Below are positions 3,796 to 59,034 of a DNA stretch of 64,000 bases, one piece after another. The first letter of the stretch is position 1. Every line of letters begins with the position of its first letter. The notes beneath the pieces were generated by a model. It saw nothing but the letters and a program-made list of their open reading frames with translations, searched no databases and was not told the DNA's origin. Position numbers and translations under genes: made by a program. Where the stretch lies: positions 124,001 to 188,000 of IMG/VR virus record IMGVR_UViG_3300007352_000001; one strand, written 5' to 3'.

Positions 3796-3868
3796 GGCGA
3801 GATGGCAGAGTTGGTCAACGCGCCGGTCTGAAAAGCCGGACATCTCGGTTCGATTCCGAGTCTCGCCA
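3796..3868 (+). tRNA. tRNA-Phe(GAA)
   Basis: Cloverleaf GGCGAGA/TCTCGCC, anticodon loop CTGAAAA, T-loop GTTCGATTC. Confidence 0.92.
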
Positions 3869-3888
3869 CTTGTTCGTGGAAGGGTTGT

Positions 3889-3963
3889 GGTGGCTGTAGC
3901 TCAGTTGGCTAGAGCGCGTGACTGTGGCTCACGAGGTCGAGGGTTCGATTCCCTCCAGTCACC
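3889..3963 (+). tRNA. tRNA-His(GTG)
   Basis: G-1, acceptor GTGGCTG/CAGTCAC, anticodon loop CTGTGGC, discriminator C. Confidence 0.93.
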
Positions 3964-3975
3964 CTTCTTTCGGAG

Positions 3976-6376: not shown

Positions 6377-6855
6377 GCGGCCTCCAGTGGCGGCGGTCCG
6401 CCGTACGAGTAGGCGCCCACATGGCCGTCGGGGAGTGGCCACTGGCGTCCGGACTGTTCATGGCTGATGCTGACGATGGTCGCGCGGATGTTGAAGAAGC
6501 GGGCGTCCAGATGCGCGCAGTTGAAAAACGTGCGCATTTCGTTGATCCACGGTTCGAGCTTCGCATGCGTGACCCGTCCCACGATCACACAGAAGGGCTG
6601 GAATGGCTTCAGCTCGTCGTACACACAGAACATCGACGGGACGGTGATCCGTCGCTTCAGACGGCCCTGACGCGGCCCAGGCGGGCCGAACACGTCGTGT
6701 CGTGGACAGACCGCAGCGACGCGATTCCCCATCCGCAGCAAAACCCGCCGCACCGCCCCGTGGTCTCGGCCGTGGCGGTCGACCCGCGGCAGTCGCTCCT
6801 GGTCCGTGCGGTACTTCACGTAGAGCGTGCACGAGCGGTTCTCGAACGACGACAT
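6373..6855 (-). CDS. hypothetical protein
   Basis: Open frame overlapping the trpC-like start; start uncertain. Confidence 0.5.
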   Translation of the reverse strand: MSSFENRSCTLYVKYRTDQERLPRVDRHGRDHGAVRRVLLRMGNRVAAVCPRHDVFGPPGPRQGRLKRRITVPSMFCVYDELKPFQPFCVIVGRVTHAKLEPWINEMRTFFNCAHLDARFFNIRATIVSISHEQSGRQWPLPDGHVGAYSYGGPPPLEAA

Positions 6856-6884
6856 GGGAGGCCAGCGGACCGTCCAGGACCGTC

Positions 6885-7286
6885 TCACCAGACCCAGCCA
6901 CCAGGCCAGGCGTAGCCGTAGTCGTAGACCCCAGGCTGCGGGCGGACGATGACGATGCTCGACCCGGTCGCCTCGCACGTCGACTCGCCCGGTGCGCACT
7001 GCACCGTTTCCAGCTGGCGGGTACGCCGGCCGTCAGTCACTGCCGCGGCACCTGGCGGCACCTGCACCACGCTGATCGGCGGCTGTGTCTGCAGGACCGG
7101 GAAGTACCCACAGCCGGTCGCAAACACGCCGAGGTAGATGATGCCAGCCACGACGGCGGCAATGCCGAACGGGTGATCTGTGAGCACGCTCCGCGCGACA
7201 GCGGCCCACGACGGCTCCTGGGGTAACGGTTCGTCTCGTCTGACGATGACCATCCGACCATCGACCCTCTTCCACTCGTGGCACAT
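6885..7286 (-). CDS. membrane protein
   Basis: Hydrophobic segment PFGIAAVVAGIIYLGVFATGC; SD GGGAGG. Confidence 0.6.
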   Translation of the reverse strand: MCHEWKRVDGRMVIVRRDEPLPQEPSWAAVARSVLTDHPFGIAAVVAGIIYLGVFATGCGYFPVLQTQPPISVVQVPPGAAAVTDGRRTRQLETVQCAPGESTCEATGSSIVIVRPQPGVYDYGYAWPGGWVW

Positions 7287-7313
7287 GCTGAGCCCTCCCG
7301 GCCGAGGACTCTA

Positions 7314-7670
7314 TTACAGGTCGGAAGATCCCTGCAACAGCAAAAAGACGCCCTCTGCGGCCAACGCGTTGGCCGTGACGTCCATCGTTGCGTCTTCGTA
7401 CCGATCATCCAGCCACTGCTGACCGCAGCCGTAGCAGATGCCGGCGGGGTAGGTGATCACCTGACTGACATCACCCCAGTAGATCTTGGACTGCGTCTCG
7501 TGGAACTCGGTGCTATCGCTCTCACCACAGTTCGGACAGCGGGCTCGCCGTGCCGCCGCTTGCTCCGCGGTTTCCAGATCCCCCGTGTCGAGCGACATCA
7601 CCAGGCGAGGAAGAGACCGCAGAGCATGCCGATCCCGAACATCACCCAGGACCGGTGCCGGACGTGCCAC
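7314..7670 (-). CDS. YgiT/MqsA-type zinc-finger protein (true start probably near 7598)
   Basis: CPNCG...PAGICYGCGQQW. Confidence 0.6.
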   Translation of the reverse strand: MARPAPVLGDVRDRHALRSLPRLVMSLDTGDLETAEQAAARRARCPNCGESDSTEFHETQSKIYWGDVSQVITYPAGICYGCGQQWLDDRYEDATMDVTANALAAEGVFLLLQGSSDL

Positions 7671-7732
7671 GGCTGCTGCGCTGGAGGTGGTGCCACCCGT
7701 AGCCGACGCGGGAAGTGCACGACCTGGTGCAT
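7598..7732 (-). CDS. small membrane protein (44 aa)
   Basis: MHQVVHFP...WVMFGIGMLCGLFLAW; SD-like GAGG. Confidence 0.45.
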   Translation of the reverse strand: MHQVVHFPRRLRVAPPPAQQPWHVRHRSWVMFGIGMLCGLFLAW

Positions 7733-7764
7733 GCCTCGATCTAGCGCACTTCTCGGCCGTCCGT

Positions 7765-7818
7765 CCAATGGCCCATTGAAGGAGCCATTGAAGGGGGCAC
7801 TGTATGCGCCCTTCAATG
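7765..7818. repeat. CCATTGAAGG direct and inverted repeats
   Basis: CCATTGAAGG at 7773-7782 and 7785-7794; inverted copy CCTTCAATGG at 7809-7818. Confidence 0.8.
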
Positions 7819-7842
7819 GCCCAATACAGACAAGGCAGCTCC

Positions 7843-8001
7843 CTCTGAGTATTTAGGCAAACGCCTCGCTGCGCTCCCGCCTTCGGCTCCGCTCCGCTCG
7901 CAGGGGTTCTCCTGATGGCGCCAGGGGCGCGCAGCGTAAGCGTAGCGCCCCCGCGCCCTACATATGCTTTTTTTGTTCTCTCTGAGTATTTTTAGGCAAA
8001 C
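7843..8001 (-). repeat. two copies of CTCTGAGTATTT(TT)AGGCAAAC, candidate phage promoter
   Basis: Copies at 7843-7862 and 7980-8001; core also found inverted at 23714-23728. Confidence 0.75.
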
Positions 8002-8705: not shown

Positions 8706-8724
8706 CGTCGTCTCCAGGAAGAAG

Positions 8725-8799
8725 AGCCCGCGGAGGGAGTCGAACCCCCGGCCCGCTGCTTACGAAGCAGCCGCTCTGGCCAGACTGAGCTACACGGGC
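8725..8799 (-). tRNA. tRNA-Thr(CGT)
   Basis: Reverse complement folds as a cloverleaf; anticodon stem GCTGC/GCAGC, loop TTCGTAA. Confidence 0.92.
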
Positions 8800-8812
8800 G
8801 TGTGAAAGGGAG

Positions 8813-8884
8813 TGGGCTCGGCGAGAGTCGAACTCGCACCACTCGGCTTAAAAGGCCGATGCTCACCAACTGAGCTACGAGCCC
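8813..8884 (-). tRNA. tRNA-Lys(TTT)
   Basis: GGGCTCG/CGAGCCC acceptor, loop CTTTTAA. Confidence 0.93.
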
Positions 8885-8942
8885 AGGGAAGGGCTCGCGT
8901 CATTTCAGCCGAGTCATCATGAGGGAAGGAAGGGGTACGCCT

Positions 8943-9029
8943 CCAAACCGCTGCCACCAGCCCGAGAACGGGAGCCTGACGCCCCGTCGCGTCGCATTAC
9001 TGCGCGCATCAGCTATCTGGTGGATTTGG
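8943..9029 (-). ncRNA. candidate structured ncRNA inside the tRNA cluster
   Basis: Nested stems CCACCAG/CTGGTGG, AGCTGATGC/GCGTCAGGCT, CGCA-GTAA-TGCG GNRA hairpin, possible pseudoknot GACGGG/CCCGTT. Confidence 0.4.
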
Positions 9030-9106
9030 CGCATCGTTCACCGTTCGGCGTTCAATCGTGCGATCAAGCAACCCTGCGCTTTGCGGCTATGAGCTTTTCG
9101 ATCCGT

Positions 9107-9182
9107 TGGGATCAAGTACGGGAGTTGAACCCGTTACCTTCTGGTTTCAGGCCAGACGCTCTACCAAATGAGCTAACTTGGG
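9107..9182 (-). tRNA. atypical tRNA-like gene, anticodon TGA (nominal Ser), short variable loop; possibly pseudo-tRNA
   Basis: D-arm AGCTCATTTGGTAGAGC, anticodon stem TCTGG/CCAGA with loop CCTGAAA, T-loop GTTCAACTC, encoded CCA, but pairs 1:72 and 2:71 mismatched. Confidence 0.7.
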
Positions 9183-9232
9183 TATGCCACGCTTCTCTCG
9201 CTTCGCTGCCGAAGGCGTACCGCGGTCTCCTC

Positions 9233-9781
9233 TCAGTCGTCGATTGTGATCTTGGTCGTCGCGTTCAGGAGCGAGAGCTTGCCGTCGAGATCACCGAGCG
9301 TCTTCTCGATGGCCTCGATCTCGGCCGTCAGCTCCGACTCCTTGACGTTGATGATCACAGTCTCTTCCGGTTTACCAGCGCTCGTGTCGCCGGCCTGTAC
9401 GACCTGCCGCCCGCGCGCCTGGTTGCGCGTGTGCTGGATTGTCTGGAAGAGCTGCGCCAGGTACTGCTTCTGGCCCTCGGAGATCTCCCGGCGCCAGGTG
9501 AGCCACCCCGCCAGCGTGCGCGTCCGCTCGCCGAGTGTCAGCGTGACCTCTTGGTTCTTCGCCTGGACCGCGGTGCGGATCCGGATCACGCGCTCTTCGA
9601 GGTCGTTGATCGCCTGCCGCTCGCGCCGGATGAACTCGGCCGACCCGCCGTCGATGTCCTCCATCGGATCGCGCAACTGCCCGCCGCGTGCCAGGTACGG
9701 GATGATCGACTCGCGCTTCTTCCCGAGCCGGGCTTCGATCGTCTTGATCTCGGCCAGGGCCTCCGTGATCGTCGTCTCCAT
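9233..9781 (-). CDS. conserved coiled-coil hypothetical protein (DIP1984-like)
   Basis: MxxTITEAL...I..L..RI..I..A...N...LSLLNATTKI pattern; SD AGGAGG. Confidence 0.7.
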   Translation of the reverse strand: METTITEALAEIKTIEARLGKKRESIIPYLARGGQLRDPMEDIDGGSAEFIRRERQAINDLEERVIRIRTAVQAKNQEVTLTLGERTRTLAGWLTWRREISEGQKQYLAQLFQTIQHTRNQARGRQVVQAGDTSAGKPEETVIINVKESELTAEIEAIEKTLGDLDGKLSLLNATTKITIDD

Positions 9782-9795
9782 TTTTGCCTTCCTCC

Positions 9796-9981
9796 TCACA
9801 GGTCGAGCTTGCGGGGTGGCCGACTCTCGAACAGCTCCTGGAGCTTCACCGATTCCACCTCTCCGGAGGTGAAGGCGGCGCACACACGTTCGACCAATGC
9901 CCGCCCCGCAAGCCGCGCGGCGACGTCGTCCGTGCCGGGCACGCGCAACCGGACGACCAGTTGGTAGTTGTTCCCGTCCAT
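9796..9981 (-). CDS. hypothetical protein
   Basis: SD GGAG, 61 aa, same strand as the neighbour. Confidence 0.5.
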   Translation of the reverse strand: MDGNNYQLVVRLRVPGTDDVAARLAGRALVERVCAAFTSGEVESVKLQELFESRPPRKLDL

Positions 9982-10152
9982 GAAGCTCCGTGGCGTAGCA
10001 GACCTCTTAGAAGTTGTCACGGTCTTTTGCCGGTGCTACGACAGGCGTCGAAAGTTTTCTCCCACTCGCGTGGGCGTTTTTGGCTCTGGGGAGCATCTTA
10101 CTAGGTAGGGGACTTGTGGTGGCTTGCGGCGGGGGAGGGCGGAAGGTGCAGG

Positions 10153-10183
10153 TTGGCACGCTCTTCGCACCTTTGTACCGGTA
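10153..10183 (+). promoter_or_regulatory. sigma54-like repeated promoter motif, copy 1
   Basis: TTGGCACGCTCTTCGCACCTTTGTACCGGTA, identical to the copy at 58286-58316 (minus). Confidence 0.75.
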
Positions 10184-10207: not shown

Positions 10208-11425
10208 ATGCCAGATCAGAGTCTCAGTCTCGTCGAACTGCTCACCCGTTTCGCGAGGCTGGAGTACAACGTCCTCATGACGGGGCACACCGGCGTCGGC
10301 AAGACGACGGTGGGGCTCCACGTGTGCGAGCGCATCTGCTCGTACCAGGTGAAGTTCTTCAATGCGGCCATCATGGACCCGCAGGTCGAGCTGCTCGGGA
10401 TCCCGACCCCAGACCTCGACTTCGAGCGCCAGCGCGAGCGGATCTTGCGGGTGTTGATCGACTTCGGGTTGAAGGGGACCTTCCGGCCCTTGGAGAGCGA
10501 GACGCCGACCGAGACCTACTCGCGCGTCACGCAGCTGGTCGACACCGCGTTCGACCGGCCGAAGTCGCTGCAGTTCCTGCGCCCGAAGTTCATCGACGAG
10601 TGCGACGTGTTCTTCGTCGACGAAATCAACCGCGCCGAAGTGCAGACGCTGAACGGCATCATGGAGGCGATCCAGTTTGCCACGGTCATGGGCGATCGGC
10701 TGCCGCGCCTCAAGATGACCTGGGCGACGCGCAACCCCGACGGCGACGACATGGGCTACCACGTCCAGCGCATGGACCCGGCCTTGATCCAGCGGTTCCG
10801 GACCTTCGTCGAGGTCGACGCGCAGCCGGCGGTCGACATCCTCGTTGCGTGCGGGCCGATGCGCGAGGCAGTCGCTCGCAACCTGATCGAGTGGTACACC
10901 GCGCTGCAGGAGGGTGTGAAGCTGCACCTGCCGCCACGCCGCTTGGAGTACATCGGCAAGGCGTTCGAGGATGGGCTGCCGCTGGAGTTCGCCATCCCAC
11001 CGTTGGTCGACGTCACCAAGCTGCCGCTCAAGAATCTGGAGACCATGCTGCGCAGCGCGACCAAGTCGACGCTGGTCAGCAAGGATGACCTCTCGACGCC
11101 GGAGAAGCGCGCGGCCTTGATCGGGCGCATGAACGACGGCACGGCCAAGGGGCTCAGTGTCACCGTGCAGGTGCAGAAGATCCTCTCGCACCCGACGGTG
11201 AAGCTGCACAAGTTGATCGAGTACGTCGAGGTCGTCGAGGCGATGCGTTTGGAGACGCGTGTCGGTATGTGGGCCGCGATCGGCACGCGCCTGCTGAATC
11301 AGGTACCGGAGCCGGCCAAGTACGACTTCTCGCAGTTCGGTGCGCAGGAAGAGAGTGCGCGCCGTCTCTTCCGCGTCGCGATCCGCGACGGGTTCTACCA
11401 GGACGTGAAGCCGACGGACATCTGA
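10208..11425 (+). CDS. MoxR-like AAA+ ATPase
   Basis: Walker A GHTGVGKT, Walker B FFVDEINRA, ATRNP, MDPALIQRF. Confidence 0.9.
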   Translation: MPDQSLSLVELLTRFARLEYNVLMTGHTGVGKTTVGLHVCERICSYQVKFFNAAIMDPQVELLGIPTPDLDFERQRERILRVLIDFGLKGTFRPLESETPTETYSRVTQLVDTAFDRPKSLQFLRPKFIDECDVFFVDEINRAEVQTLNGIMEAIQFATVMGDRLPRLKMTWATRNPDGDDMGYHVQRMDPALIQRFRTFVEVDAQPAVDILVACGPMREAVARNLIEWYTALQEGVKLHLPPRRLEYIGKAFEDGLPLEFAIPPLVDVTKLPLKNLETMLRSATKSTLVSKDDLSTPEKRAALIGRMNDGTAKGLSVTVQVQKILSHPTVKLHKLIEYVEVVEAMRLETRVGMWAAIGTRLLNQVPEPAKYDFSQFGAQEESARRLFRVAIRDGFYQDVKPTDI

Positions 11426-29213: not shown

Positions 29214-29747
29214 ATGCGATACGGAGGATTGCGGTTGCTGGTGCCGCCGCCTACTGACGAAGTGCGCCGAGGGGAACGGCAGTTGCTCCTGGCAATGATG
29301 GACGACGCGCAAACGTGTCTGCGTACGGCGATGACGAACTCCCGCACGTTCTGGGACACCTACGTGTGGATGTACGACCGCAGGTGCTCGGCGCCGTTCT
29401 CCTTCGAGGATACCTGCATCTATCTCCGGCTCGATCCGGAAGCAGTCCGCGATTGCCTGCGCCGCGACTTGCAGCGGCGGTTCCCGAACGGCATCCCACC
29501 GCTCTACGACGAGGACCCGCATGAACAACGTGCCCGAGCCGCTCGCGCCGGGGGTGATGCTCAAGCTCTTTCGTCCCCCAAACCCCAAAACCCAGCAGAT
29601 GGGGTTCGAGATCATCGTGTCCGATCAGAACGACAACGAAGCCGTGCAGCGGCTGAAGCAGCTGGCCAGCGAGATCCGGGGACTCGCCGACCCAGCCTAG
29701 CTGGCACGGCTCCTGCACGTTTGTACCGGTTGGAGGTCTACCAGTGA
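29214..29747 (+). CDS. hypothetical protein (ExxLLLAxxxDA...FSFExxCxxLxLDPxxVR family); 3' part may instead belong to a separate 59-aa ORF 29521-29700
   Basis: Recognisable N-terminal family motif; C-terminus looks off-frame. Confidence 0.55.
   Translation: MRYGGLRLLVPPPTDEVRRGERQLLLAMMDDAQTCLRTAMTNSRTFWDTYVWMYDRRCSAPFSFEDTCIYLRLDPEAVRDCLRRDLQRRFPNGIPPLYDEDPHEQRARAARAGGDAQALSSPKPQNPADGVRDHRVRSERQRSRAAAEAAGQRDPGTRRPSLAGTAPARLYRLEVYQ
29702..29730 (+). promoter_or_regulatory. sigma54-like repeated promoter motif, copy 2
   Basis: TGGCACGGCTCCTGCACGTTTGTACCGGT followed by SD GGAGG and GTG at 29744. Confidence 0.65.
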
Positions 29748-30571: not shown

Positions 30572-30643
30572 GCGGCGGTCGGTTAGTCGGTAAACCACGA
30601 GACTCCAAATCTCGGACCGGGGGTTCGATTCCCTCCCGCCGTG
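30572..30643 (+). tRNA. tRNA-Trp(CCA)
   Basis: GCGGCGG/CCGCCGT acceptor, CGAGA-CTCCAAA-TCTCG anticodon arm. Confidence 0.9.
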
Positions 30644-30685
30644 CTCTGAGGTCGCAGCTGATGATGTGGTGTGGTGGAGGTGTGG

Positions 30686-34127: not shown

Positions 34128-34838
34128 ATGGGAATGCGGCTACTCAATCGACTCAAGGACATCGTCACCGCGGTGCTCGATCAGCGCGTGCAGGAGGCCG
34201 AGTCGCAGAACGCTGGCGCGCTCGCGCAGCAAGACATCGGCCGGCTCGAAGAAGCCCTGCGCGAGTCGTCCGGCGCTGTTGCCTCACTGGGCGCCGAAGT
34301 GCAAGCACAGGCCGACCTGGAAGCGGAACTGCGCGGGGAAGTACAGCGCTGGCACGACGTCGCCAAGATCGAGGCCGAAGCCGGGCACGACGACACAGCG
34401 CGCCAGGCGCTGCAGCGCAAGCTCGACGCCGCGGCCGAACTCCAGGCGGTCTCGACCGGCTACGCGGCGTTGAAGGAACGCTTCGAGACGGCCAAGGGGC
34501 GCGTGCTGGAGAATGCCGAGCGTCTCCAGCAAGCGAAGTCGCGCGTCCGCACCGCCGTCGCGCGTGACCAGGCCGAGCAAGCAACCGCCGCGGCTGATCG
34601 CGCGTTCGGTGACCTCGGGGATCACGAAGACCTCTTCCAGCGCATCGACGTGATGGAGGATCACATCGAGCGTCGCGAGCGCACCAACGAAGAGGCGCGC
34701 AAGCTGGCCGATCAGATCGCCGGCAAGGATCTCCTCCGTGCGGCCGATCAGACGGCGCGCACGCGGGCGGTCGAGGACGAGCTGGCGGCGCTCAAGACCC
34801 CGCCGCCGGCCGCACCGGCGAGTTCACCGACTGCCTGA
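34128..34838 (+). CDS. pspA: PspA/IM30 family protein
   Basis: M.LL.RLKDIV.A.L, coiled coil, AR.AL.RK, F.RI..ME..I.R.E, VEDELAALK. Confidence 0.85.
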   Translation: MGMRLLNRLKDIVTAVLDQRVQEAESQNAGALAQQDIGRLEEALRESSGAVASLGAEVQAQADLEAELRGEVQRWHDVAKIEAEAGHDDTARQALQRKLDAAAELQAVSTGYAALKERFETAKGRVLENAERLQQAKSRVRTAVARDQAEQATAAADRAFGDLGDHEDLFQRIDVMEDHIERRERTNEEARKLADQIAGKDLLRAADQTARTRAVEDELAALKTPPPAAPASSPTA

Positions 34839-35037
34839 GCAGCAATGCTCGAAGACACTACAACCGGCGGCGCGGACCCTTCGCGCTCAGCCCTAGCTGA
34901 GTACCGTCGCCACAAGGTGACACGAGGCGATCTTCACCCGCCGCATGCGTACCAGCCGGTTGTAGAGGGGGAGGGTGGCGCATCCACCCTCCCCCGTCCT
35001 TCGGAAGGGAGTGAAACAGGACCAGCTCTTGGCCAAG
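34837..35037 (+). ncRNA. candidate omegaRNA/sgRNA-like scaffold plus guide
   Basis: GAGCA-GCAA-TGCTC; 11-bp CTACAACCGGC/GCCGGTTGTAG enclosing three hairpins; 12-bp GGGGGAGGGTGG/CCACCCTCCCCC; ends GGAAGGGAGTGAAAC. Confidence 0.45.
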
Positions 35038-36071
35038 TCAATCGCACCCAAGCCGTGCCGCTCGTGTACGTCACTGGGGAGGAGCGCAGGCAGCTGCTGC
35101 GCTACGCGTATATCGCTGCGCGGTTCGGCAACCAGCTCCTCACGTCCCAGTACGCGCAGTTCACCGCCCGACAGCAGATCGCGGCGCTCGCCGAGCAACA
35201 CCAGGTGCCTGAGAAAGAGCTGCTGAAGGCGTGGACGGTCTATCGGGACTTCGCCGACGAGCTGTCAGGCTACGTCCGCGATGCCGTGCAGCGGGAAGTG
35301 CAAGGGATCTGGAAGCGCCTTTTCAAAGACATCATGGCTGGCCGGCAGACGCTGGCCTGTTTCAGGATGCACCGGGCGCTCTCGATCCGCGGGCGCGGTG
35401 TCACGCTGTTCAAGGACCAGGACAGTGCGTACCACTTCACGTTCCGCTTCGGGCCACGGTCGGGTGCGCCGACCCAGCTCTCAGTGTACATGGACACGTT
35501 GTGCCGCAATCCGTTTCTCGAAGCGTTGCTCGACAAGCTGATCGACGGCACCACGTACGAGATCACTCACGCGACGATTCGGATCCCACGCACCGGCAAC
35601 AAGCTGAAGGTGCTGCTGGGTTACCGGAAACCGGCTGTCGCGCAGCTGGTGCATGAGACGCGAGCCTTGGTCGCGCTCGAAGCGGGCGTGCTCGTTGTGC
35701 GCTGCGGCTCGACCATGATGACGCTTGGGGACCGTGTCTACCGCCTCCGTGAGATGAAGCTCCACCTCGACGGGATCCAGCGGCGCTTGCGCGCCACGCT
35801 CAATCGTCGCAGCCGGCGTGGGGAGTATCGCCGCCAGCTCGCACACGCGCAGAGCTTCGAGGAGTGGGCGCGGACTCCACTGCATCAGCTAAGCAGTGAG
35901 ATCGTCACGTGGGCACAGCGAGCCGGGGCCGGCCAACTCGTCTATATGATGCCGAGCACGGCCGACCTGCCCTGGGCGACGCTGCATCAGCAACTGGAGT
36001 ACAAGAGCGCTGAGCACGGCATGCGGTACGAACGAAGAGAGACGAAAGTTGAAAAGTCTGACGAGCCGTAG
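34845..36071 (+). CDS. TnpB/Cas12f-like protein with degenerate RuvC (nuclease-dead); true start uncertain, possibly near 35035-35055
   Basis: DIMAGRQTLACFR, LHQLSSEIV.WA, W..L.QQLEYKSAEHGM; RuvC-I Asp and RuvC-II Glu positions not acidic; no zinc finger or RuvC-III. Confidence 0.7.
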   Translation: MLEDTTTGGADPSRSALAEYRRHKVTRGDLHPPHAYQPVVEGEGGASTLPRPSEGSETGPALGQVNRTQAVPLVYVTGEERRQLLRYAYIAARFGNQLLTSQYAQFTARQQIAALAEQHQVPEKELLKAWTVYRDFADELSGYVRDAVQREVQGIWKRLFKDIMAGRQTLACFRMHRALSIRGRGVTLFKDQDSAYHFTFRFGPRSGAPTQLSVYMDTLCRNPFLEALLDKLIDGTTYEITHATIRIPRTGNKLKVLLGYRKPAVAQLVHETRALVALEAGVLVVRCGSTMMTLGDRVYRLREMKLHLDGIQRRLRATLNRRSRRGEYRRQLAHAQSFEEWARTPLHQLSSEIVTWAQRAGAGQLVYMMPSTADLPWATLHQQLEYKSAEHGMRYERRETKVEKSDEP

Positions 36072-36125
36072 CAACAATCGTTGAGCCGGCTCGCACGGGG
36101 CGGGCCATTGTGGAAGGAGTGAGCA

Positions 36126-36737
36126 ATGATGCGGATCAAGATCGGTGAGGGTGACGAGGCCGACGACTACGGCGTCGGGTTCGGATACCAGGAGAAGCGG
36201 CGCGGCCGGACGCGGAAGCAGGGCGGAACCCCGCACTTGTCGGTCACAACGACGGCGATCGTCCAGCTGCCCAAGCGGTTCCAGTTTGCCGATGTGTTCG
36301 GCGTCGGGCCGCACCAGACGGACGAGGACGGCACTCTGCGCGGGGTCGTGACGATCCACGATGACGAGGGTGACCCGACGTTGACGGCCGAGGAACGCGC
36401 CAAGCACGCGTTCGTGGTCGAAGTCGTGCAACCGAAGGGCAAGGACGAGGCGCTCGATCGCGTCATGCTGATCGCCAGAACACGGTGCCACTCAGTGGCG
36501 GACGTCTACGATCGCGGCCGTGGCCGGCGCGGGGCGTTGCGCCGAGTGCTGACCGGGTTCAAGCAACTGCTTCCTGACGTCTATCTCGCCAAGGGCGATC
36601 GCCGCAGCGTACTCGCCAAGCAGATCTGGGCGATGTACTTCGACCGCACGCGGGACGGCGTCGAGTTTGGCATGCGCGGCCCGTTTCTGAAGACGGACAA
36701 GAAAGAGGCTGTGCTGGATCCCGCTCCTTTGGAGTGA
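36126..36737 (+). CDS. hypothetical phage protein
   Basis: SD GGAG; C...D.YDR..GR..ALRR motif. Confidence 0.65.
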   Translation: MMRIKIGEGDEADDYGVGFGYQEKRRGRTRKQGGTPHLSVTTTAIVQLPKRFQFADVFGVGPHQTDEDGTLRGVVTIHDDEGDPTLTAEERAKHAFVVEVVQPKGKDEALDRVMLIARTRCHSVADVYDRGRGRRGALRRVLTGFKQLLPDVYLAKGDRRSVLAKQIWAMYFDRTRDGVEFGMRGPFLKTDKKEAVLDPAPLE

Positions 36738-36739
36738 CC

Positions 36740-38167
36740 ATGTCCTTGAAGTACCGCGCAGAGTTGCACGGGACGAACCACTACGTGTTGCCGCGCATCG
36801 GCACGATGCGGTGCGACGTGCACGCGTTCATGTCCCCAGAGCTGTACACGATCAGCGACGAAGGCACCTGGCAACAAGCCTTCGACGCTGCGTCGTACCC
36901 GAACGTGCGCGGAGTCTACCTGATGCCCGACTGCCATCTCGGGTACGGCATCCCGGTTGGCGGTGTAGTTGTCACCGACGGCGTGATCATCCAGTCGGGG
37001 TCGGGGTACGACATCTCATGCGGTGTCATCTACATGCGCTTGCCGGGAGTCACCGCAGCCGACGTCGTTGACTGGGAGCGCCGGCTGCGATGGGTGCGGG
37101 AAGTCGAGCTGCGGGTGGCCACTGGTGTCGGCCGGCACCGCCCGAAGCTCGCCCCCAAGATCACTGGTCGGATGATCGCCGAGGTCTTGCTCCACGGTGC
37201 CAAGCCCTTGGGCGTGTCGGCCGACGTGTGCGAGCGGCAGTTCATCCAGGTCGACGAGAAGCACTTCGACTCACAGCGGGTCGAGCGCGCCATCGAGCGT
37301 GCTGGCGACCAGCTTGGCTCGGTCGGCGGCGGCAACCACTTCATCGAGCTGCAGGTGGATCGAGACACCGGTGAGGTGTGGGCGATGGTGCACTGTGGCA
37401 GCCGCGGCTTTGGTTGGCAGACGGCCAACCACTTTTTCTTCGCGGGCGCGGAAGCGCGCGGCCTGCCGAAGAACCGGCGCGAGTCGTCGTGGCTGTACGC
37501 CGACGAAGAAGTCGGGAAGCAGTATTGGGCGCATCACAACGCGGCGGCGAACTACGCGATCGCCAACCGGCACATGATCGTCGAAGGCGTGCGCGAGGCG
37601 ACGCAGGAAGTGTTCGCGGCGAGCCCAGAGGTCTACTTCGAGATCTCGCACAACCTCGTGCAAGACGAGCGCGTGCTCGTGCCTGGTGCGGACGGCTCCT
37701 ACGAGTTTGTGCGTGGGTTCGTGCACCGTAAAGGCGCGACGCGCGCCTTCCCGGCACACCACCCCGATCTCGTCGGGACGAAGTGGGAAGAGACTGGGCA
37801 CCCGTGTCTGATTCCAGGCTCGATGCTCGACGGAGCTGCGATCTTGTTCCCGACCTTCCGCACGGTGGAGAGCGGGTTCTCAGTCAACCACGGCTCGGGT
37901 CGTGCCGTGGCGCGTGGACAGGCCAAGCGAGATCTCGAACCGCTGCAAGAGGACATCGACACCGAAATGCGGACGATCCGCCGCACAGTCGGCCCCGACC
38001 GGGTCGAGATCGTGGGCATTGTTGGCAACACAGCGAAGACGCCACTCGATGAGTGCGGACACGTCTACAAGAAGCTCGACCAGGTTGTAGGATCGCTGGT
38101 TGATGCCGGCGTGGCCACCGTTAGTGCGCGACTGTATCCCGTGGCGAACTTGAAAGGGACGGACTGA
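36740..38167 (+). CDS. rtcB: RtcB RNA 3'-phosphate/5'-OH ligase
   Basis: MPDCHLGYGIPVGG, DISCG, QLGSVGGGNHFIE, HCGSRGFG, HN, HRKGAT, IPGSM, HGSGR. Confidence 0.96.
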   Translation: MSLKYRAELHGTNHYVLPRIGTMRCDVHAFMSPELYTISDEGTWQQAFDAASYPNVRGVYLMPDCHLGYGIPVGGVVVTDGVIIQSGSGYDISCGVIYMRLPGVTAADVVDWERRLRWVREVELRVATGVGRHRPKLAPKITGRMIAEVLLHGAKPLGVSADVCERQFIQVDEKHFDSQRVERAIERAGDQLGSVGGGNHFIELQVDRDTGEVWAMVHCGSRGFGWQTANHFFFAGAEARGLPKNRRESSWLYADEEVGKQYWAHHNAAANYAIANRHMIVEGVREATQEVFAASPEVYFEISHNLVQDERVLVPGADGSYEFVRGFVHRKGATRAFPAHHPDLVGTKWEETGHPCLIPGSMLDGAAILFPTFRTVESGFSVNHGSGRAVARGQAKRDLEPLQEDIDTEMRTIRRTVGPDRVEIVGIVGNTAKTPLDECGHVYKKLDQVVGSLVDAGVATVSARLYPVANLKGTD

Positions 38168-38274
38168 CGCTGGGCCTTGCTCGTGGTGGGGTGAGGTCCG
38201 GTTCTGCCCGAGGCGGTTGGTGTTGGGAAGAGCGCCAGCCGTCTCGGGTTCCACCGAGTGAAAGGAGGAGGGCG

Positions 38275-38937
38275 ATGGCTGTTCGTGATCGGGTACACCG
38301 ATTGGTCACCGGTGCGTTTCATCAGATGATCTCTGCGATCGAGAACCAGGCTCCAGATGCCGTGATGGAGCAGGCGATTCGCGAGGCTGACGAGGCAACC
38401 GAGGAAGCTCGCAGTGAGTTGGCGCAAGTGCTGACGCGACAGCATTTGGCGTCGTCGCGTATCGCACGCGATACGGACGCGCTGCGCGCACTGGACGCGC
38501 AGGTGCAGTTGGCTCTGAAGGAGAAACGAGAGGACCTCGCGCGCGAAGCAGTCGCGCGGCAACTGGACCTCGAAGCGCAACTGTCGGTCGTGCAGGAGGC
38601 GGCGGATCACGAAGCGCATGCACGCGCTGACCTCGAACGCATGATCCTCGCGCTCGATGCCCAGCGGCGAGAGATGCGCGAGGAGTTGGCAGCGTTCCGC
38701 GCTCAGCAGGACCGGGCCGTTCCAGGCGTTGACGCACCACCGATGGGTGGCGTCACGGGGACCGTCGCGGAGCAGCGGGCTCGCCGGGCGAAAGAAGTGT
38801 TCGGCGATGTCATGAGCCGGCAGACGAATCTCCCGCGGCCACTCGGGTCCACCAGCAAGCTCCAAGAGTTGGCGGACCTGGAGCGGACACATCGGATTGA
38901 CGAACGACTCGCTGCTGCGAAGGCACAGCAAGGTTAG
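38275..38937 (+). CDS. pspA: PspA/IM30 family protein (second paralog)
   Basis: R..RLV....H..IS.IE..AP..V.EQAIRE, REDLAREA..RQ, I.ERLAA.K; SD AGGAGG. Confidence 0.85.
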   Translation: MAVRDRVHRLVTGAFHQMISAIENQAPDAVMEQAIREADEATEEARSELAQVLTRQHLASSRIARDTDALRALDAQVQLALKEKREDLAREAVARQLDLEAQLSVVQEAADHEAHARADLERMILALDAQRREMREELAAFRAQQDRAVPGVDAPPMGGVTGTVAEQRARRAKEVFGDVMSRQTNLPRPLGSTSKLQELADLERTHRIDERLAAAKAQQG

Positions 38938-38939
38938 CC

Positions 38940-39626
38940 GTGACTTCCTTCACCTTCCTGCTGCAGGCGGGCGTGTGGCCGTTCACGGCAAGCCTGTCCT
39001 TGGTCGTGGTGCTCGCGATCTTGGAGTTCATGACGTACGTGGCAGGCCTTGGTGGAATCACGCATGCATTCGAGCACGCCTTTGGTGTCGATCTCGATGG
39101 CGACTTCGACATGGCGCACCCAGATTTCTCTCACGGGGGCGTCTTCGTAAAGGCCGTGAACTGGGCGCGGGTGGGAGAACTTCCACTGTCGATCTTACTG
39201 ATCACGTGGTGGTTCCTCTTCGGCATCGTGGGGGTGGGGGCACAATACGCGTCGTCGATCGTGCTTGGTGGTGCCACGATGCCGTTTTGGATCGTGGTCT
39301 GGCCAGTGATGGCCGTGTCGATTGGCGCGTACCGAGGGTGCGCGCGGATCTTTGTGCGGGTCTTGCCGACTGATGTCGAGACGTACGCGGTCGAGCCGTC
39401 GTCGTTCGTCGGAAGGACGGCAACTGTGGTCATGGGTACGGCGACCGTGACCGCCCCTGCTCAAGCTCGCTTGGTGGATCAGTACGGGAACGCGCACTAC
39501 GTCATGGTCGAGCCGAGCGATCCAGAGCAGGCGTTCGCGCCTGGTGCCACCGTGCTGCTTGTTGAACAAAACGACGCGGTATTCCGCGTTATCAACCCGC
39601 CGAGCGCACTGTTACTCGGCACGTGA
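38940..39626 (+). CDS. YqiJ/DUF1449 NfeD-like inner membrane protein
   Basis: PF..SL..V..L..LE, PL.ILL, C-terminal OB fold G.A.V..G.A....PAQARL.DQYG..HYVMVEP. Confidence 0.85.
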   Translation: MTSFTFLLQAGVWPFTASLSLVVVLAILEFMTYVAGLGGITHAFEHAFGVDLDGDFDMAHPDFSHGGVFVKAVNWARVGELPLSILLITWWFLFGIVGVGAQYASSIVLGGATMPFWIVVWPVMAVSIGAYRGCARIFVRVLPTDVETYAVEPSSFVGRTATVVMGTATVTAPAQARLVDQYGNAHYVMVEPSDPEQAFAPGATVLLVEQNDAVFRVINPPSALLLGT

Positions 39627-39639
39627 TGGGGGAGAGCTG

Positions 39640-41436
39640 ATGGAAGGTTTGATCGGAATCGGGATGGTGGTCGCAGTCTGCATGGCCGGGCTGGGTGCGA
39701 TTGCCTTCATGATGTCGCGGCTCTACGTGCGCGCCACGCCCGAGTGGGCACTGGTCCGCAGCGGCTACCGCGGCAAGAAGGTTGTGATCGACGGCGGGTG
39801 CTTCGTCCTGCCGGTCTACCACGAGATCCAGCGGGTCAACATGAAGACGGTGAAGCTCGCCGTCACGCGCCAGCAGCGGGACTCGTTGATCACCAAGGAT
39901 CGGCTGCGCGTCGATGTCATCGTGGAGTTCTACGTCCGCGCCAAGCCGGACGCGACGGCGATCCCGGAAGCGGCTCGGACGCTCGGGGAGCGCACCGCCG
40001 ACCAAGCGGCGCTCAAGGATCTCATCGAGGGCAAAGCGGTCGGCGTGCTGCGTGCGGTTGCGGCGCGCATGACGATGGCAGAGCTGCACGAGGACCGGGC
40101 GAAGTTCGAGCAGGAAGTGCTGAACGGCGTGCAGAAGGACCTGACGAAGAACGGCCTCGAACTGGAGTCGTCGGCGATGACGCACTTCAACCAGACGGCC
40201 AAAGAGTTCTTTGTCGCCGAGAACGCCTTTGACGCCGAAGGGCTCGCAATGCTCACCGCTGCGGTCGAGCAGCGTCGGCAAGAGGTGAACAACATCGAGG
40301 TGACCACGCGCGTGGCGATCGAGACGCGCAATCTCGAAGGGCAGCGGCGATCGTTGCAACTCGCGCAGGATACGCAGGAGGCGATGCTGACTCAGCAGCT
40401 CGCCATCGAGACCGCCACTGCGCAGCGCAAACGTGAGATCGCACAACAGCAGGCAGAGCAGGATCGGCTGGCGCAAGAGGCGCAGATCGCCGCGCAACAG
40501 CAAGTGCAGCTGGCGTCGGTCGAAGCCGAACGGACTGTGCAAGAGGCGAAGGCGCAACAGCACGCCGCCGTGCAACAGGCGCAGATCGCTTCAGAGCGGG
40601 CGGTGAAGGTGGCCGACGAACAGCGCCAGCGTGATGTGGCGGTGGCGGCTGAGGAACGTCAGCGTGACGTGGAAGTGGCCAAACAGGAGCGCAACATCAA
40701 GGTGCAGACCAAGAGCGAGGAGCTGTCGGGTGCCACGGCCAGTGCTGAACGCGCTCGTGCCGAGGCGGTCGTAGCCGAGCAGCAGGTCATCACGGCCCAA
40801 GCGGTGGCCTCCGCGGATCGTGAGAAGCAAGTGGCGGTGATCGCGGCTGAGCGCGAGGCACAGCAGGGGGCGGTCGGCCTGGTGGTCAACGCCAAGGCGC
40901 ATGAGGATGCCGCCGCACACGAGGCCGCAGCTGTCATGGTGAGAGCGACGGCGGATACCGACGCCAAGCGCCTCGCCCTGGAGATCGCGGAGCGTGACTT
41001 CGCGGTCCGCGCCACGGGCACGCGGCTCTTGCACGAGTCCGAGAACGTGCTCGGGCAGTCGGCGATGGACTTGCGGCTGCGCCTGGCCCTGGTCGAGCAC
41101 GCCGCGGCGATGATCACTGCGGCCGGCAAGCCGGTCGAGCACATCAAGGATCTGCGGGTCATTGCCGTGCAGGGCATTCCGGGGCTGGCGGGGCCGTTGC
41201 CGGTGAACGGCGACGGCTCTACCGTTGCCAACGGCACTGGGCACGACGCCGGATTGCCCGACCAGATCGTCAATGCGGCCCTGCGTCACCAGGCGCTCGC
41301 GCCGCTGGTTGGGCTGTTGATGGGGGAGATCGGCATCGACCCCACGACCATGAATGGCATTGCTCGCCCTCTGACTGACATGGCGGTGGCGCGGCCCGCC
41401 CACCCAGCGAACGGAGATGCCCGAGCGTCGAGCTAA
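39640..41436 (+). CDS. flotillin/SPFH protein (YqiK-like)
   Basis: N-terminal TM, LITKDRLRVDV..EFYVR, DL.KNGLELES..MT..NQT, FDAEGL, AE-rich coiled coil. Confidence 0.92.
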   Translation: MEGLIGIGMVVAVCMAGLGAIAFMMSRLYVRATPEWALVRSGYRGKKVVIDGGCFVLPVYHEIQRVNMKTVKLAVTRQQRDSLITKDRLRVDVIVEFYVRAKPDATAIPEAARTLGERTADQAALKDLIEGKAVGVLRAVAARMTMAELHEDRAKFEQEVLNGVQKDLTKNGLELESSAMTHFNQTAKEFFVAENAFDAEGLAMLTAAVEQRRQEVNNIEVTTRVAIETRNLEGQRRSLQLAQDTQEAMLTQQLAIETATAQRKREIAQQQAEQDRLAQEAQIAAQQQVQLASVEAERTVQEAKAQQHAAVQQAQIASERAVKVADEQRQRDVAVAAEERQRDVEVAKQERNIKVQTKSEELSGATASAERARAEAVVAEQQVITAQAVASADREKQVAVIAAEREAQQGAVGLVVNAKAHEDAAAHEAAAVMVRATADTDAKRLALEIAERDFAVRATGTRLLHESENVLGQSAMDLRLRLALVEHAAAMITAAGKPVEHIKDLRVIAVQGIPGLAGPLPVNGDGSTVANGTGHDAGLPDQIVNAALRHQALAPLVGLLMGEIGIDPTTMNGIARPLTDMAVARPAHPANGDARASS

Positions 41437-49090: not shown

Positions 49091-49179
49091 GGGACAGTGG
49101 CCGAGTCCGGCTGAAGGCACCAGTCTCGAAAACTGGCGACGGCGCAAGTCGTCCGAGCGTTCAAATCGCTCCTGTCCCG
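49091..49179 (+). tRNA. tRNA-Ser(CGA)
   Basis: GGGACAG/CTGTCCC acceptor, loop CTCGAAA, long variable arm GACGGC-GCAA-GTCGTC. Confidence 0.93.
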
Positions 49180-49244
49180 CCTTCCCAGGACCGGGAGGAG
49201 TCCCACGGGCTCCTCCCGTGTCCAACCTGGCGACGAGGGTGGTG

Positions 49245-56191: not shown

Positions 56192-56385
56192 GGGCGGAAG
56201 TCCTCCAGCCACGAGGGGCCGAAGTTGTTGCGGACACGCTGCAGGCTCGCCGCCAGGTCGCCGACGTCGAGCCCTTCGCGGCGGTAGTTGCCGCTGAGCC
56301 AGGCGTTGCGGATGGCTGCCTTGTACTCTCTGCCGAGAAGGTTGCGCGCCCGCTCGACGGCCGCTCGTGCTTCCTGTTCAGTCAT
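56185..56385 (-). CDS. hypothetical protein
   Basis: ATG directly follows the repeated motif. Confidence 0.7.
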   Translation of the reverse strand: MTEQEARAAVERARNLLGREYKAAIRNAWLSGNYRREGLDVGDLAASLQRVRNNFGPSWLEDFRPC

Positions 56386-56414
56386 ACCGGTACAAAGGTG
56401 CGAGAACTATGCCA
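56385..56414 (-). promoter_or_regulatory. sigma54-like repeated promoter motif, copy 3
   Basis: TGGCATAGTTCTCGCACCTTTGTACCGGT-ATG. Confidence 0.75.
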
Positions 56415-56580
56415 ACGTGTACGTGTGGCCTTTGGTGGCGCTCACGTACTTGTCGGCGCCGTACCATTTGACATGGTCGATCTCACCGTCGTCCGAGACG
56501 ATGGTGGACCAGTGGGCCACCGTGTCGACCTTGAAGCGTTTCCTGTCCCCGTCACGGACTAGGGTGTCACCGGGTCGCAC
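56407..56580 (-). CDS. small hypothetical protein (57 aa)
   Basis: GTG start overlapping the upstream stop; MRPGDTLVRDGDRKRFKV... Confidence 0.45.
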   Translation of the reverse strand: MRPGDTLVRDGDRKRFKVDTVAHWSTIVSDDGEIDHVKWYGADKYVSATKGHTYTLA

Positions 56581-57443: not shown

Positions 57444-58286
57444 TCACTTCGCCTTGCGCTGGATCTTCGGCCAGCGGGTCTTGTCGCGCGCGATCGCCTT
57501 CTCGTCGTCGACGTTGGACGCATGCTTGGTAGCCAAGGCGAGGGCGACCAGGTCGGCGCGATCGGCGTGGCTAGAGCGTATGCGCGGCGCGTCCTCACGA
57601 TCGGTCTGCTCGTTCCAGTAGTCGACGTCGCGCAGCTCGCGGGCCAGATCCTCGTACGCGGACCGCTCGGTGTTGTAGAGCACCCAGCCCTTGACGGGGT
57701 GAAGGACGGCCTTCGCCAGCTTCTCGGCGCGCTTGGTATCGCGCTCAGCCTTGCGGGCTTCCTTCGCTTCACGCGCCTCGCGGCCGACGCGCCCCTCGCC
57801 CCAGAACTTCGAGGCCGGCGCCGACGGGAAGCAGACGGTGCACATCGTCTCGCCGTATTCCTTGACCGCTTCCTCTTCGGTCGCGCCGGAGAGGGTGAAC
57901 ACCCATGAATACTGCGTGGTCGGGAAGCAGGTCGAGCAGCCGCGCGTGCTGTGGACGTGGCCGTTGCCGTTGGTGACCAGGTAGAAGCGTGACCAGGGGC
58001 GCCGCGCGTATTCCTCGTGCAGCGGCGCCGCCGCGGCGCGGGCGGCATCGCGCTTGCGCGTGTACGCGGCGACCTCGGCTTCCGCCTCATCGAGTCCATG
58101 GAACCGGAAGTCCGGGCCGTACCTGTCGGGATGCCGCTCGTGCAGTAGCTTCGAGTCCTCCAGCAGGCGCTCGACACGGTTGGTCAGGTAGGACAGCCGG
58201 AAGATCGCGTCGTACTCGATCCCCACCAGGCGGGCCAACTCGGTGTCGATCTCGACCGGCGTCTGCGTGCTGAGTGGCTTCGACAT
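57444..58286 (-). CDS. hypothetical protein
   Basis: ATG directly after the motif; H.H....CSTC, CTVCFP motifs. Confidence 0.75.
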   Translation of the reverse strand: MSKPLSTQTPVEIDTELARLVGIEYDAIFRLSYLTNRVERLLEDSKLLHERHPDRYGPDFRFHGLDEAEAEVAAYTRKRDAARAAAAPLHEEYARRPWSRFYLVTNGNGHVHSTRGCSTCFPTTQYSWVFTLSGATEEEAVKEYGETMCTVCFPSAPASKFWGEGRVGREAREAKEARKAERDTKRAEKLAKAVLHPVKGWVLYNTERSAYEDLARELRDVDYWNEQTDREDAPRIRSSHADRADLVALALATKHASNVDDEKAIARDKTRWPKIQRKAK

Positions 58287-58316
58287 ACCGGTACAAAGGT
58301 GCGAAGAGCGTGCCAA
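58286..58316 (-). promoter_or_regulatory. sigma54-like repeated promoter motif, copy 4
   Basis: TTGGCACGCTCTTCGCACCTTTGTACCGGT-ATG. Confidence 0.75.
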
Positions 58317-58946
58317 TCAGTCCCCCAGGAACCTGTTGCGATTGTCCATGGGGATGAGGGCGCCGTGCCCAGCGTCGACGATTGCTTGGTAGAGTCGCCT
58401 AGCACCTGCTTTGAGGTGTGCGACTTGTACCGGGTCGATGTGGGCGAGCCAGTGAACCTGGTCGACGGTGTAGCTGGCTGGATGACTCGCCGGCAGCTGC
58501 AGGACGTCGTTCAGTACCTTGCGTAGATCGTGCGCGACCTTCAGCGGCTTCCTTGGGTCGTCAGGCTTCGCCACTGGCGGCTTGAGCCCTTGGCGGAAGA
58601 GTGCCTGGCGAAGTGCGTTGCCGCCGAAGTCGTAGTGATCCGACCGGCCGACGTAGATGTACGGCGCCGCACTCTCGAACACCCAGCGTGTCGGGTCATA
58701 GACGCGACCGTCTGGAAGGTCGATCCAGCCGTGGTTCGAGAACGGCCGGCCCGTGAAGATGTTCCCTTCGGCGATCGGGCCGTGCCAGATGCCGTACGAG
58801 AGCTGTGAACGTGCCGGCAGAAGCTCAGAACGAAAGACCTGTGACGCAACCTGGTAGCAGTGACCAGGCCATCCTTCGACCGGCCAGTTGATCAGGGCGG
58901 CAACGGTCCGCACGTCGAGTGCGCGTTTGCTGAGACGAGTCGGCAT
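58317..58946 (-). CDS. hypothetical protein
   Basis: G.CY..A, HGW...DG...DPT motif; follows the motif. Confidence 0.7.
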   Translation of the reverse strand: MPTRLSKRALDVRTVAALINWPVEGWPGHCYQVASQVFRSELLPARSQLSYGIWHGPIAEGNIFTGRPFSNHGWIDLPDGRVYDPTRWVFESAAPYIYVGRSDHYDFGGNALRQALFRQGLKPPVAKPDDPRKPLKVAHDLRKVLNDVLQLPASHPASYTVDQVHWLAHIDPVQVAHLKAGARRLYQAIVDAGHGALIPMDNRNRFLGD

Positions 58947-58977
58947 CTATCGGGACAAAGGTGCGAGAGGTATGCCA
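58946..58977 (-). promoter_or_regulatory. sigma54-like repeated promoter motif, copy 5
   Basis: TGGCATACCTCTCGCACCTTTGTCCCGATAG-ATG. Confidence 0.7.
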
Positions 58978-59003
58978 CCGATCGCGTCGATCTGCTAGAG
59001 GAG

Positions 59004-59034
59004 TTGGCACAATCCCTGCACTTTTGTCCCGGTA
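59004..59034 (+). promoter_or_regulatory. sigma54-like repeated promoter motif, copy 6 (divergent from copy 5)
   Basis: TTGGCACAATCCCTGCACTTTTGTCCCGGT-ATG. Confidence 0.7.

Follow-up and report, generated by a model that had tools for sequence, protein, structure and literature searches.

The subject of this analysis is a two-component locus on the + strand of a 64,000-nucleotide (nt) stretch of DNA, positions 124,001 to 188,000 of the IMG/VR virus record IMGVR_UViG_3300007352_000001, which as a whole is called the window below. The locus comprises a gene for a dead, C-terminally truncated homolog of Cas12f, a miniature effector of CRISPR systems (35055..36071; 338 amino acids (aa) from GTG 35055, stop codon at 36069-36071), and a structured RNA resembling a trans-activating CRISPR RNA (tracrRNA), which is encoded just upstream on the same strand (34858..34965). 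The source is a metagenomic contig of 241,426 bp, also present in IMG/VR, and its portal gene, phage replication module and seven tRNA genes, carried on a contig of this size, identify it as a jumbo phage.

The gene and its protein family

The + strand open reading frame (ORF) terminating at 36071 extends without interruption from ATG 34845, and GTG 35055 is the start given in the public gene call. Because the G+C content of third codon positions drops to 0.56 across 34845-35042, compared with 0.82 within the gene body and its neighbours, the upstream extension is regarded as non-coding, and the codon-position composition places the beginning of the coding signature near 35025-35070. The Arg-Thr codons of the family's N-terminal motif, RTxxVPL, lie in frame at 35043-35048, and no canonical start codon occurs between 34968 and 35055. 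A first-pass annotation, made from the sequence alone, had started the gene at 35035, which is roughly the right position and is not a start codon.

Searched as a single sequence, the protein matches the NCBIfam model guided_TnpB (E 1.7e-8, below the cutoff, profile positions 5-338 of 389), PHROG 506, annotated as 'transposase' (E 1.8e-5), and the PADLOC model for Cas12f (E 2e-9), and a Pfam search of the 338 aa returned nothing significant. Homology to TnpB/Cas12f is weak yet consistent at this level and becomes strong at the level of the family, which was assembled by running phmmer exhaustively over 1.84 billion representatives. This search yielded 93 clusters (50% identity), 68 of them at E < 1e-10 and most with proteins of 330-420 aa. 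Word-indexed protein searches recovered only the query itself or one additional member, tblastn of the protein against isolate phages gave no match, and the search for related loci from the single protein sequence returned the same contig only.

A family alignment and profile were built from 71 homologs. Compared with the PDB, the profile matches AsCas12f (8j3r, 4e-23) and another Cas12f1 (9i8y, 4.9e-23), with Cas12f structures ranging from 4e-23 to 1e-22, followed by the sigma-E-associated dCas12f (9n9c, 2.4e-15) and 9nzp, a chain deposited under the name TnpB (3.5e-15); the corresponding scores are 85 bits for AsCas12f versus 59 for 9nzp and 59.5 for 9n9c. A single-sequence structure prediction (predicted local distance difference test, pLDDT, 43.5) was replaced by an alignment-based AlphaFold model with a pLDDT of 95.5 and a predicted template-modelling score (pTM) of 0.84. 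For this model, the best Foldseek match is AsCas12f (E 2.6e-15, TM 0.60), and the top 20 matches are all Cas12f or dCas12f; 9n9c follows at E 2.7e-13, the ISDra2-type TnpB 8h1j at E 2e-6, and Cas12m (E 3.8e-6) and Cas12k (E 1.4e-5) appear as distant structural matches. The modelled structure shows the Cas12f WED-REC-RuvC scaffold retained. Because both the profile bits and the Foldseek E values favour AsCas12f, the protein is a derivative of Cas12f and not a direct derivative of TnpB, and with this descent it is not a TldR, the dead protein that derives directly from TnpB.

The catalytic residues have been lost throughout the family. In the profile alignment, the RuvC-I aspartate of AsCas12f falls on window residue 207, a column occupied among the 71 sequences by Pro (30), Glu (10) and gaps (6), with no Asp in the seven commonest states (59/71), while the RuvC-II glutamate aligns to residue 298, where the column is unconserved (Ala 14, Leu 10, Glu 6, others). 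The window protein ends about 16 aa past the YK..E.G motif and lacks RuvC-III. All 71 members likewise stop soon after this motif, and since their tails are short, at most 74 aa, and carry CxxC in none of the 71, the zinc finger (TNB) and RuvC-III are taken to be gone; the Pfam TNB model is matched only over its first 21 positions, at E 0.22. As judged from the 71 aligned sequences, nuclease death and truncation are a trait of the whole family, and the conservation of length and fold over 93 clusters speaks against a decaying pseudogene.

Much of the first-pass annotation of the protein stands. The three peptide motifs it quoted are all present in the translation of the + strand ORF, and its residue-level reading, with RuvC-I and RuvC-II lost and a stop before the zinc finger and RuvC-III, agrees with the catalytic columns of the 71-sequence alignment. 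The AlphaFold and Foldseek comparison that it proposed returned a WED-REC-RuvC fold of the miniature Cas12f type, and the gene's maintenance under selection, as opposed to decay, is borne out by the number of clusters, the conserved length and the confident fold. Its label of TnpB/Cas12f was right as to the superfamily, but the line of descent runs through Cas12f and not directly from TnpB, as the 85 versus 59 bits indicate.

The upstream RNA and the arrays of relatives

The RNA of the window is delimited by a 10-bp closing stem (34858-34867/34956-34965) around a multiloop with several hairpins, and the upstream region of 217-222 nt, from pspA to the GTG, folds far better than shuffled versions (z = -4.85). 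Its conserved terminal hairpin (34924..34946, + strand) consists of GAGG, a 5-bp stem, the loop AUCUUCACC and a following GCAU. This hairpin covaries across the family, with three of five pairs changing on both sides and 94% of cells paired, compared with 34-55% in slid controls, and its score was reached by only 1/500 shuffles. The RNA is present in 9 of 11 distinct homologous loci; outside the window, the same architecture lies just 5' of the gene and on its strand in L003, L005, L007, L009, L011, L031, L033 and L035. The length of the RNA varies from about 70 to 130 nt, and the closing stems, of 10-16 bp, have wholly different sequences between loci with the pairing always kept. Scanned with an nhmmer profile of the RNA, each family locus yields exactly one copy, which in all cases lies upstream of the gene and on its strand. 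The window has one copy and no second, and no Rfam family matches the RNA. As with the long ORF in the window, called ORFs run through the RNA in L011 and L031.

Directly 3' of the closing stem, a perfect 12-bp G+C hairpin (34967..34995, + strand) is likely to be the 3' end or a processing signal of the small RNA. The hairpin has no T run, and a consensus terminator scan found nothing at 34967-34995. An analogous perfect palindrome follows the tracrRNA of L009, and a T run comes directly after the closing stem in L003. An exact metagenome scan for the terminal hairpin motif returned 17 matches, 15 of which (on 14 separate contigs) are chance or coding, several of them within one conserved gene, and two of which lie on a known family contig; since the matches are mostly of the former kind, the motif alone is not diagnostic. 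Nothing conserved was seen in the 55-nt spacer downstream of the gene.

Repeat finding located CRISPR arrays beside six homologous loci. L031, on a contig of about 234 kb, has 10-11 copies of a 37-nt repeat, between which the spacers measure 31-40 nt except for one of 19, L011 has 4 repeats of 37 nt, L003 has at least 2 repeats before the contig end cuts the array, L034 has 3-5, and L035 has about 6 downstream and 2 upstream. The sixth locus, L033, carries an 11-nt repeat (GGGAGTGAAGG) in about 36 units, mostly spaced by 15-26 nt; they extend over 6275-7860 and 9110-9271 and flank both the gene and the tracrRNA (7155-7236). This 11-nt repeat corresponds to just the 3'-terminal part of the 37-nt repeats seen elsewhere in the family, and L033 may represent an extremely reduced CRISPR-type array. 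Among the called neighbours of all homologous loci, no Pfam match to cas1, cas2 or cas4 was found. At L011:11340-11489 and L035:9510-9755, in two loci that otherwise differ, a small ORF (68% identity over 41 aa) separates the dead Cas12f gene from the array, and its product may be an accessory protein.

The repeats of all these arrays terminate in AGTGAAGG or a close variant, and it is the part of the repeat directly before this ending that is complemented by the RNA. Perfect anti-repeats of 10, 10, 12 and 9 nt occur in the RNAs of L003, L011, L031 and L035, the four loci that combine the RNA with a full array, one in each, at the same relative position in the RNA and with a locus-specific sequence. 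Cognate anti-repeats of these lengths were reached in 0-3/500 shuffles, and non-cognate pairs of repeat and tracrRNA gave at most 8 nt. Because the RNAs of four loci contain perfect 9-12-nt anti-repeats to the adjacent array, the RNA is identified as a tracrRNA in these relatives, and the homologous RNA of the window, which has no repeat there to pair with, as a putative one.

A second contact is suggested by the loop of the conserved hairpin, which complements the last 6-7 nt of the repeat (GUGAAG). The loop UCUUCAC is matched with GUGAAG(G) in L003, L011 and L031, and both sides change together elsewhere, with CCUUCAC and GUGAAGG in L033 and CUGCAUU and AAUGCAG in L007. Two adjacent GUGGAA motifs match the UUUCCAC loop of L005, a locus that has neither an array nor a qualifying unit. 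This two-site pairing resembles the two separate repeat:anti-repeat duplexes of Cas12f guide RNAs. L007, a homolog on a bacterial chromosome next to an RND efflux operon, has no array and instead carries a tracrRNA (9881-9982) and a single half-repeat unit (11083-11098), which starts 6 nt past the stop codon and comprises a 9-nt anti-repeat match, an A and a 7-nt loop match.

Proposed guided binding, its alternatives and the genomic setting

Because the protein has a cognate RNA, RNA-guided DNA binding is its natural reading. We consider it somewhat probable that the locus is a two-part cassette of a tracrRNA gene and a dead Cas12f gene, devoted to DNA binding that is guided by tracrRNA and CRISPR RNA (crRNA) and proceeds without cleavage. 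The protein would bind the tracrRNA:crRNA, and the complex would find complementary double-stranded DNA beside a short motif, form an R-loop and stay in place without cutting. The bound complex could then block the transcription or replication of the target gene in the manner of CRISPR interference (CRISPRi), Cas12m and TldR, with competing mobile elements or host genes as the likely targets. The first-pass annotation had proposed an RNA-guided DNA-binding regulator, in which the guided binding remains the natural part and the regulation of transcription counts as one among several effects that binding could have.

This phage might obtain its guide from an array in the 177 kb beyond the window, from the crRNAs of a type V-F system in its host, or from a weak unit within the locus itself. 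The last candidate, a degenerate half-repeat at 35004..35017 (+ strand), reads GAAGGG-A-GUGAA-AC and has a layout like the 3' half of the relatives' repeats. It is the only exact match to GGGAGTGAARS in the window, and the surrounding 16-mer is found a single time across the whole 241-kb contig. As a repeat unit it is statistically indistinguishable from chance and serves as a lead only; if it were real, the guide would begin at 35018. Within the window the candidate guide matches nowhere else. Its first 18 nt gave 31 matches in 185,579 species genomes, which look like chance: they are scattered over unrelated phyla, their extension lengths are geometric and they have no flank in common. Intergenic 12-mers compared with their own loci were negative or at chance level, the candidate guide of L007 has no match within 21 kb of its own locus, and three scans of IMG/VR for the repeat pattern gave only chance or coding matches with no family gene near, in the last scan among the matches listed. 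An 11-mer, GAAACAGGACC, is common to window 35012-35022, after the repeat-like unit, and to L003:~64-76. It was rejected as a phage promoter or a conserved guide, as it has no other exact copy in the window and its L003 copy is part of the tracrRNA stem, at the 5' edge.

Several observations weigh against crRNA-guided binding by this cassette. The window contains no array and no guide can be assigned within it, and 4 of the 10 loci with enough flank (the window, L005, L007 and L009) have no array within about 10 kb, which leaves array-independent roles possible. The earlier statement that no TnpA, cas1/2 or array is nearby holds for the window, but arrays do lie beside six homologous loci. The complementarity of unit 35004-35017 to the RNA, 6 + 5 nt, was reached in 166/500 shuffles, and similar units occur on both strands. 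Searches for protospacers were negative for every spacer and candidate guide tried in homologous loci, isolate phages or IMG/VR, where spacers were compared with all homologous loci, arrays with isolate phages and two spacers with IMG/VR. RNA binding, DNA binding and the lack of cleavage are all attributed to the protein through homology, and the block to transcription or replication through likeness to dCas12f, TldR and Cas12m (PMC13472631, PMC13622181, PMC10442227). Finally, the start at GTG 35055 is a predicted one with conserved Arg-Thr codons on its 5' side, so that the window copy would either initiate non-canonically or have lost its first residues.

The absence of an array in the window can also be read in other ways. 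The array may have collapsed to the half-repeat 35004-35017 that follows the tracrRNA, turning the system into a transcription factor with a single fixed guide to one phage or host promoter, in the manner of TldR and sigma-E dCas12f with their single guides; this would be a specific form of the regulator proposed in the first-pass annotation. The order of the unit is as expected (anti-repeat complement, A, loop complement, unique sequence), the 241-kb contig holds no second copy of it, a convincing single unit is present in the chromosomal homolog L007, and a collapse of array and tracrRNA has been proposed for sigma-E dCas12f (PMC10691335, PMC13472631). Nevertheless, this explanation is unlikely, if the least so of the alternatives, for the complementarity to the tracrRNA is not above chance, the supposed guide has no second match in the window, its 18-mer behaves like chance in the species genomes, and it would overlap the translation start region of the gene itself. 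Likewise unlikely, and if anything more so, is an anti-CRISPR role in which the dead protein and the phage tracrRNA capture host type V-F crRNAs, either trapping them in non-cutting complexes, to the protection of the phage, or borrowing their spacers. A tracrRNA and an effector with no array in the window would fit such a decoy, and a scheme of this kind has been proposed for a phage RuvC-dead Cas9 with its own tracrRNA (PMC11656645), but six relatives possess arrays of their own with cognate anti-repeats, needless for a pure decoy, and L007 lies outside any phage.

A role independent of guides is improbable, whether the RNA is a cis-acting leader for autocontrol or the cassette a decaying remnant. 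The RNA does abut or overlap the start codon in several loci, the start of L031 falling 5-10 nt past the stem and L011 offering a candidate in-frame GTG within the closing stem (a reading, not established); the closing stem and T run of L003 are attenuator-like, and the window has no canonical start before the conserved Arg-Thr codons. These features have to be set against an intact ORF with a very confident model, a family conserved over 93 clusters, and anti-repeats matching adjacent arrays, which show that the RNA acts in trans, at least in relatives. Recruitment of a sigma factor and RNA polymerase, as by dCas12f-sigma-E, or of a transposase, as by Cas12k and type V-F CRISPR-associated transposons, is highly improbable: the truncated dead Cas12f scaffold is of the same kind as the sigma-E partner (9n9c, E 2.7e-13), but no gene for rpoE, a helix-turn-helix (HTH) partner, TnsB/C, TniQ or MuA/B adjoins the gene in any locus, and no protein neighbour is conserved across loci. 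A wider proposal extends crRNA-guided binding to the family and is plausible while falling short of probable. It holds that a widespread, mainly phage-borne clade of dead mini-Cas12f proteins, with an upstream tracrRNA and arrays ranging from 37-nt to 11-nt repeats, would serve phages as a programmable, non-cutting silencer of genes of the host or of rival elements, with the array-less carriers acting as fixed-guide regulators or hijackers of host crRNAs.

The genes around the cassette vary from locus to locus. In the window, pspA (34128-34838) lies directly upstream, and a 203-aa ORF with no assigned family (36126-36737) lies downstream, followed by rtcB, a second pspA, a YqiJ/NfeD-like gene and a flotillin gene. 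The region 34128-41436 thereby holds two PspA/IM30 genes, the RtcB RNA ligase, YqiJ/NfeD-like and flotillin (Band_7) genes, and then NAMPT, NUDIX, dCMP deaminase and Mor-like genes; such a combination of membrane-stress and RNA-repair genes as in the PspA/RtcB/flotillin cluster is unusual in a phage. Neighbours of the pspA/rtcB type recur beside no homolog. The homolog of L005 sits amid RepO/Prim-Pol/SSB genes, that of L009 between dnaB and primase, that of L011 amid UvrD/PD-(D/E)XK/DnaB/clamp/RecA genes, those of L031 and L033 amid NAD-metabolism and small unknown genes, that of L035 near an integrase, and that of L007 beside its efflux operon on a bacterial contig. An all-versus-all comparison of neighbours revealed one shared small ORF only (L011/L035). 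The phage of L009 is related to the window phage, with PolA at 37% identity over the full length, primase at 34% and the same module order, and carries the RNA-plus-gene cassette at a different site. Because the site differs between these relatives, the cassette, and not the stress genes, is considered the unit of inheritance. A functional link to pspA/rtcB was rejected on the same grounds, together with the lack of common neighbours across loci, and the first-pass placement within a phage stress operon is therefore incidental. Its other positional claim, a phage location in place of an insertion sequence (IS), is supported: TnpA is absent from the window, no Y1 or serine transposase lies beside the gene in any locus, and the sole DDE gene among the loci is found in L011, 4 kb away.

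Other features of these sequences touch the cassette less directly. The seven tRNA genes (Phe, His, Thr, Lys, Ser x2, Trp) lie at window 3796-3964, 8724-9182, 30572-30644 and 49091-49181. A motif of about 30 nt, TGGCAC-N5-(T/C)(T/C)GCA followed by CYTTTGTMCCGGT, occurs six times just 5' of ORFs, at 10154-10182, 29702-29730 and 59005-59033 on the + strand and at 56383-56415, 58284-58316 and 58946-58978 in reverse complement, and is close to the sigma-54 -24/-12 consensus. In E. coli, pspA and rtcB are sigma-54-dependent, and no copy of the motif precedes the pspA-rtcB cluster of the phage. The helicase gene at L009:5635-8166 has faint matches to homing-endonuclease/intein domains (Hom_end, Hint).

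Comparison with known systems

Natural RNA-guided proteins that bind DNA without cutting it, such as TldR, dCas12f-sigma-E and Cas12m, have only recently been recognised. Cas12f-derived dead proteins without RuvC-III, most of them linked to rpoE, were described by Altae-Tran et al. (PMC10691335) and Hoffmann et al. (PMC13472631). The latter paper further presents, in Extended Data Fig. 1a,b, a separate cluster of dead Cas12f proteins near CRISPR arrays with a putative intergenic structured RNA and no experiments; this cluster has no rpoE, and one example, from a Chitinophagaceae genome, is aimed at an RND efflux promoter. The suggestion in the first-pass annotation of a possibly new clade needs changing in that dead derivatives of Cas12f, among them a cluster linked to CRISPR, have been published before (PMC13472631, PMC10691335). 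The literature searched gave no account of carriage mainly by phages, of a tracrRNA directly upstream with two-site pairing, of arrays with 11-nt repeats or of array-less carriers.

Compared with the dCas12f-sigma-E of Bacteroidota (PMC13472631; 9n9c, 9n9m), the window protein is likewise a Cas12f-derived protein of about 350 aa with RuvC dead through the loss of acidic residues and a C-terminal truncation, keeps the Cas12f fold (TMq 0.57 and TMt 0.56 in the Foldseek match to 9n9c), and has a structured guide RNA encoded beside its gene. However, dCas12f-sigma-E has an operonic rpoE, a C-terminally extended extracytoplasmic function (ECF) sigma factor, and usually an HTH gene, whereas the neighbours in the window are pspA, the 203-aa ORF and rtcB, and no sigma-factor Pfam match was found in any homologous locus. 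The family profile also scores AsCas12f above 9n9c. Moreover, the published systems use a single chimeric guide RNA with a 14-16-nt guide and no tracrRNA found, in contrast to the tracrRNA and separate array of the relatives here, and they reside in Bacteroidota chromosomes, in contrast to the phages of G+C-rich hosts that carry the present family. The CRISPR-linked dead cluster, compared here by its description only, is similar in its arrays, its intergenic structured RNA and an RND efflux neighbour, as in L007. It differs in that its description holds no array-less state, no 11-nt-repeat arrays and no scheme of tracrRNA pairing, and in that the loci here are mostly in phage replication or early regions.

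TldR proteins (PMC10705468, PMC13622181) are also small proteins with a dead RuvC, some of them phage-encoded, and repress transcription by RNA-guided binding alone. They differ in their direct descent from IS200/IS605 TnpB, in a guide RNA that lies downstream of the gene or overlaps its 3' end and has a 9-16-nt guide, and in their linkage to fliC, csrA or oppF, whereas the present family derives from Cas12f, has its RNA upstream and in relatives uses arrays. Identity with TldR was rejected, as the Cas12f matches are far stronger than those to TnpB, the conserved RNA is upstream, and fliC, csrA and oppF are absent from the neighbours in all loci; a mobile IS200/IS605 TnpB was rejected as well, for no transposase adjoins the gene in any locus and RuvC is dead.

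Cas12m (type V-M) and Cas12k (type V-K) are type V effectors that likewise bind DNA and do not cut it, and the block to transcription exerted by Cas12m silences plasmids and phages (PMC10442227, PMC11013384). Unlike the present protein, both are of about 600 aa with a full RuvC/TNB architecture, and Cas12k works with a transposase. The phage-encoded RuvC-dead Cas9 with its own tracrRNA (PMC11656645) offers a parallel of a dead effector and a tracrRNA, possibly array-less, but belongs to a type II effector family, and its function, the sequestration of crRNA, is only proposed.

The corrected annotation of the window is therefore a predicted tracrRNA gene followed by a dead Cas12f gene, unrelated to the surrounding pspA/rtcB genes. 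If crRNA-guided binding holds, the system would offer a defined means of learning what phages silence in hosts or rivals and a compact scaffold for tools of the CRISPRi type. The 11-nt repeats of L033 may be the shortest CRISPR-type repeats seen. To the natural non-cutting binders compared above, the family would add a phage-carried branch, comprising a protein of about 340 aa and a short tracrRNA whose pairing rules can be read from nine loci.

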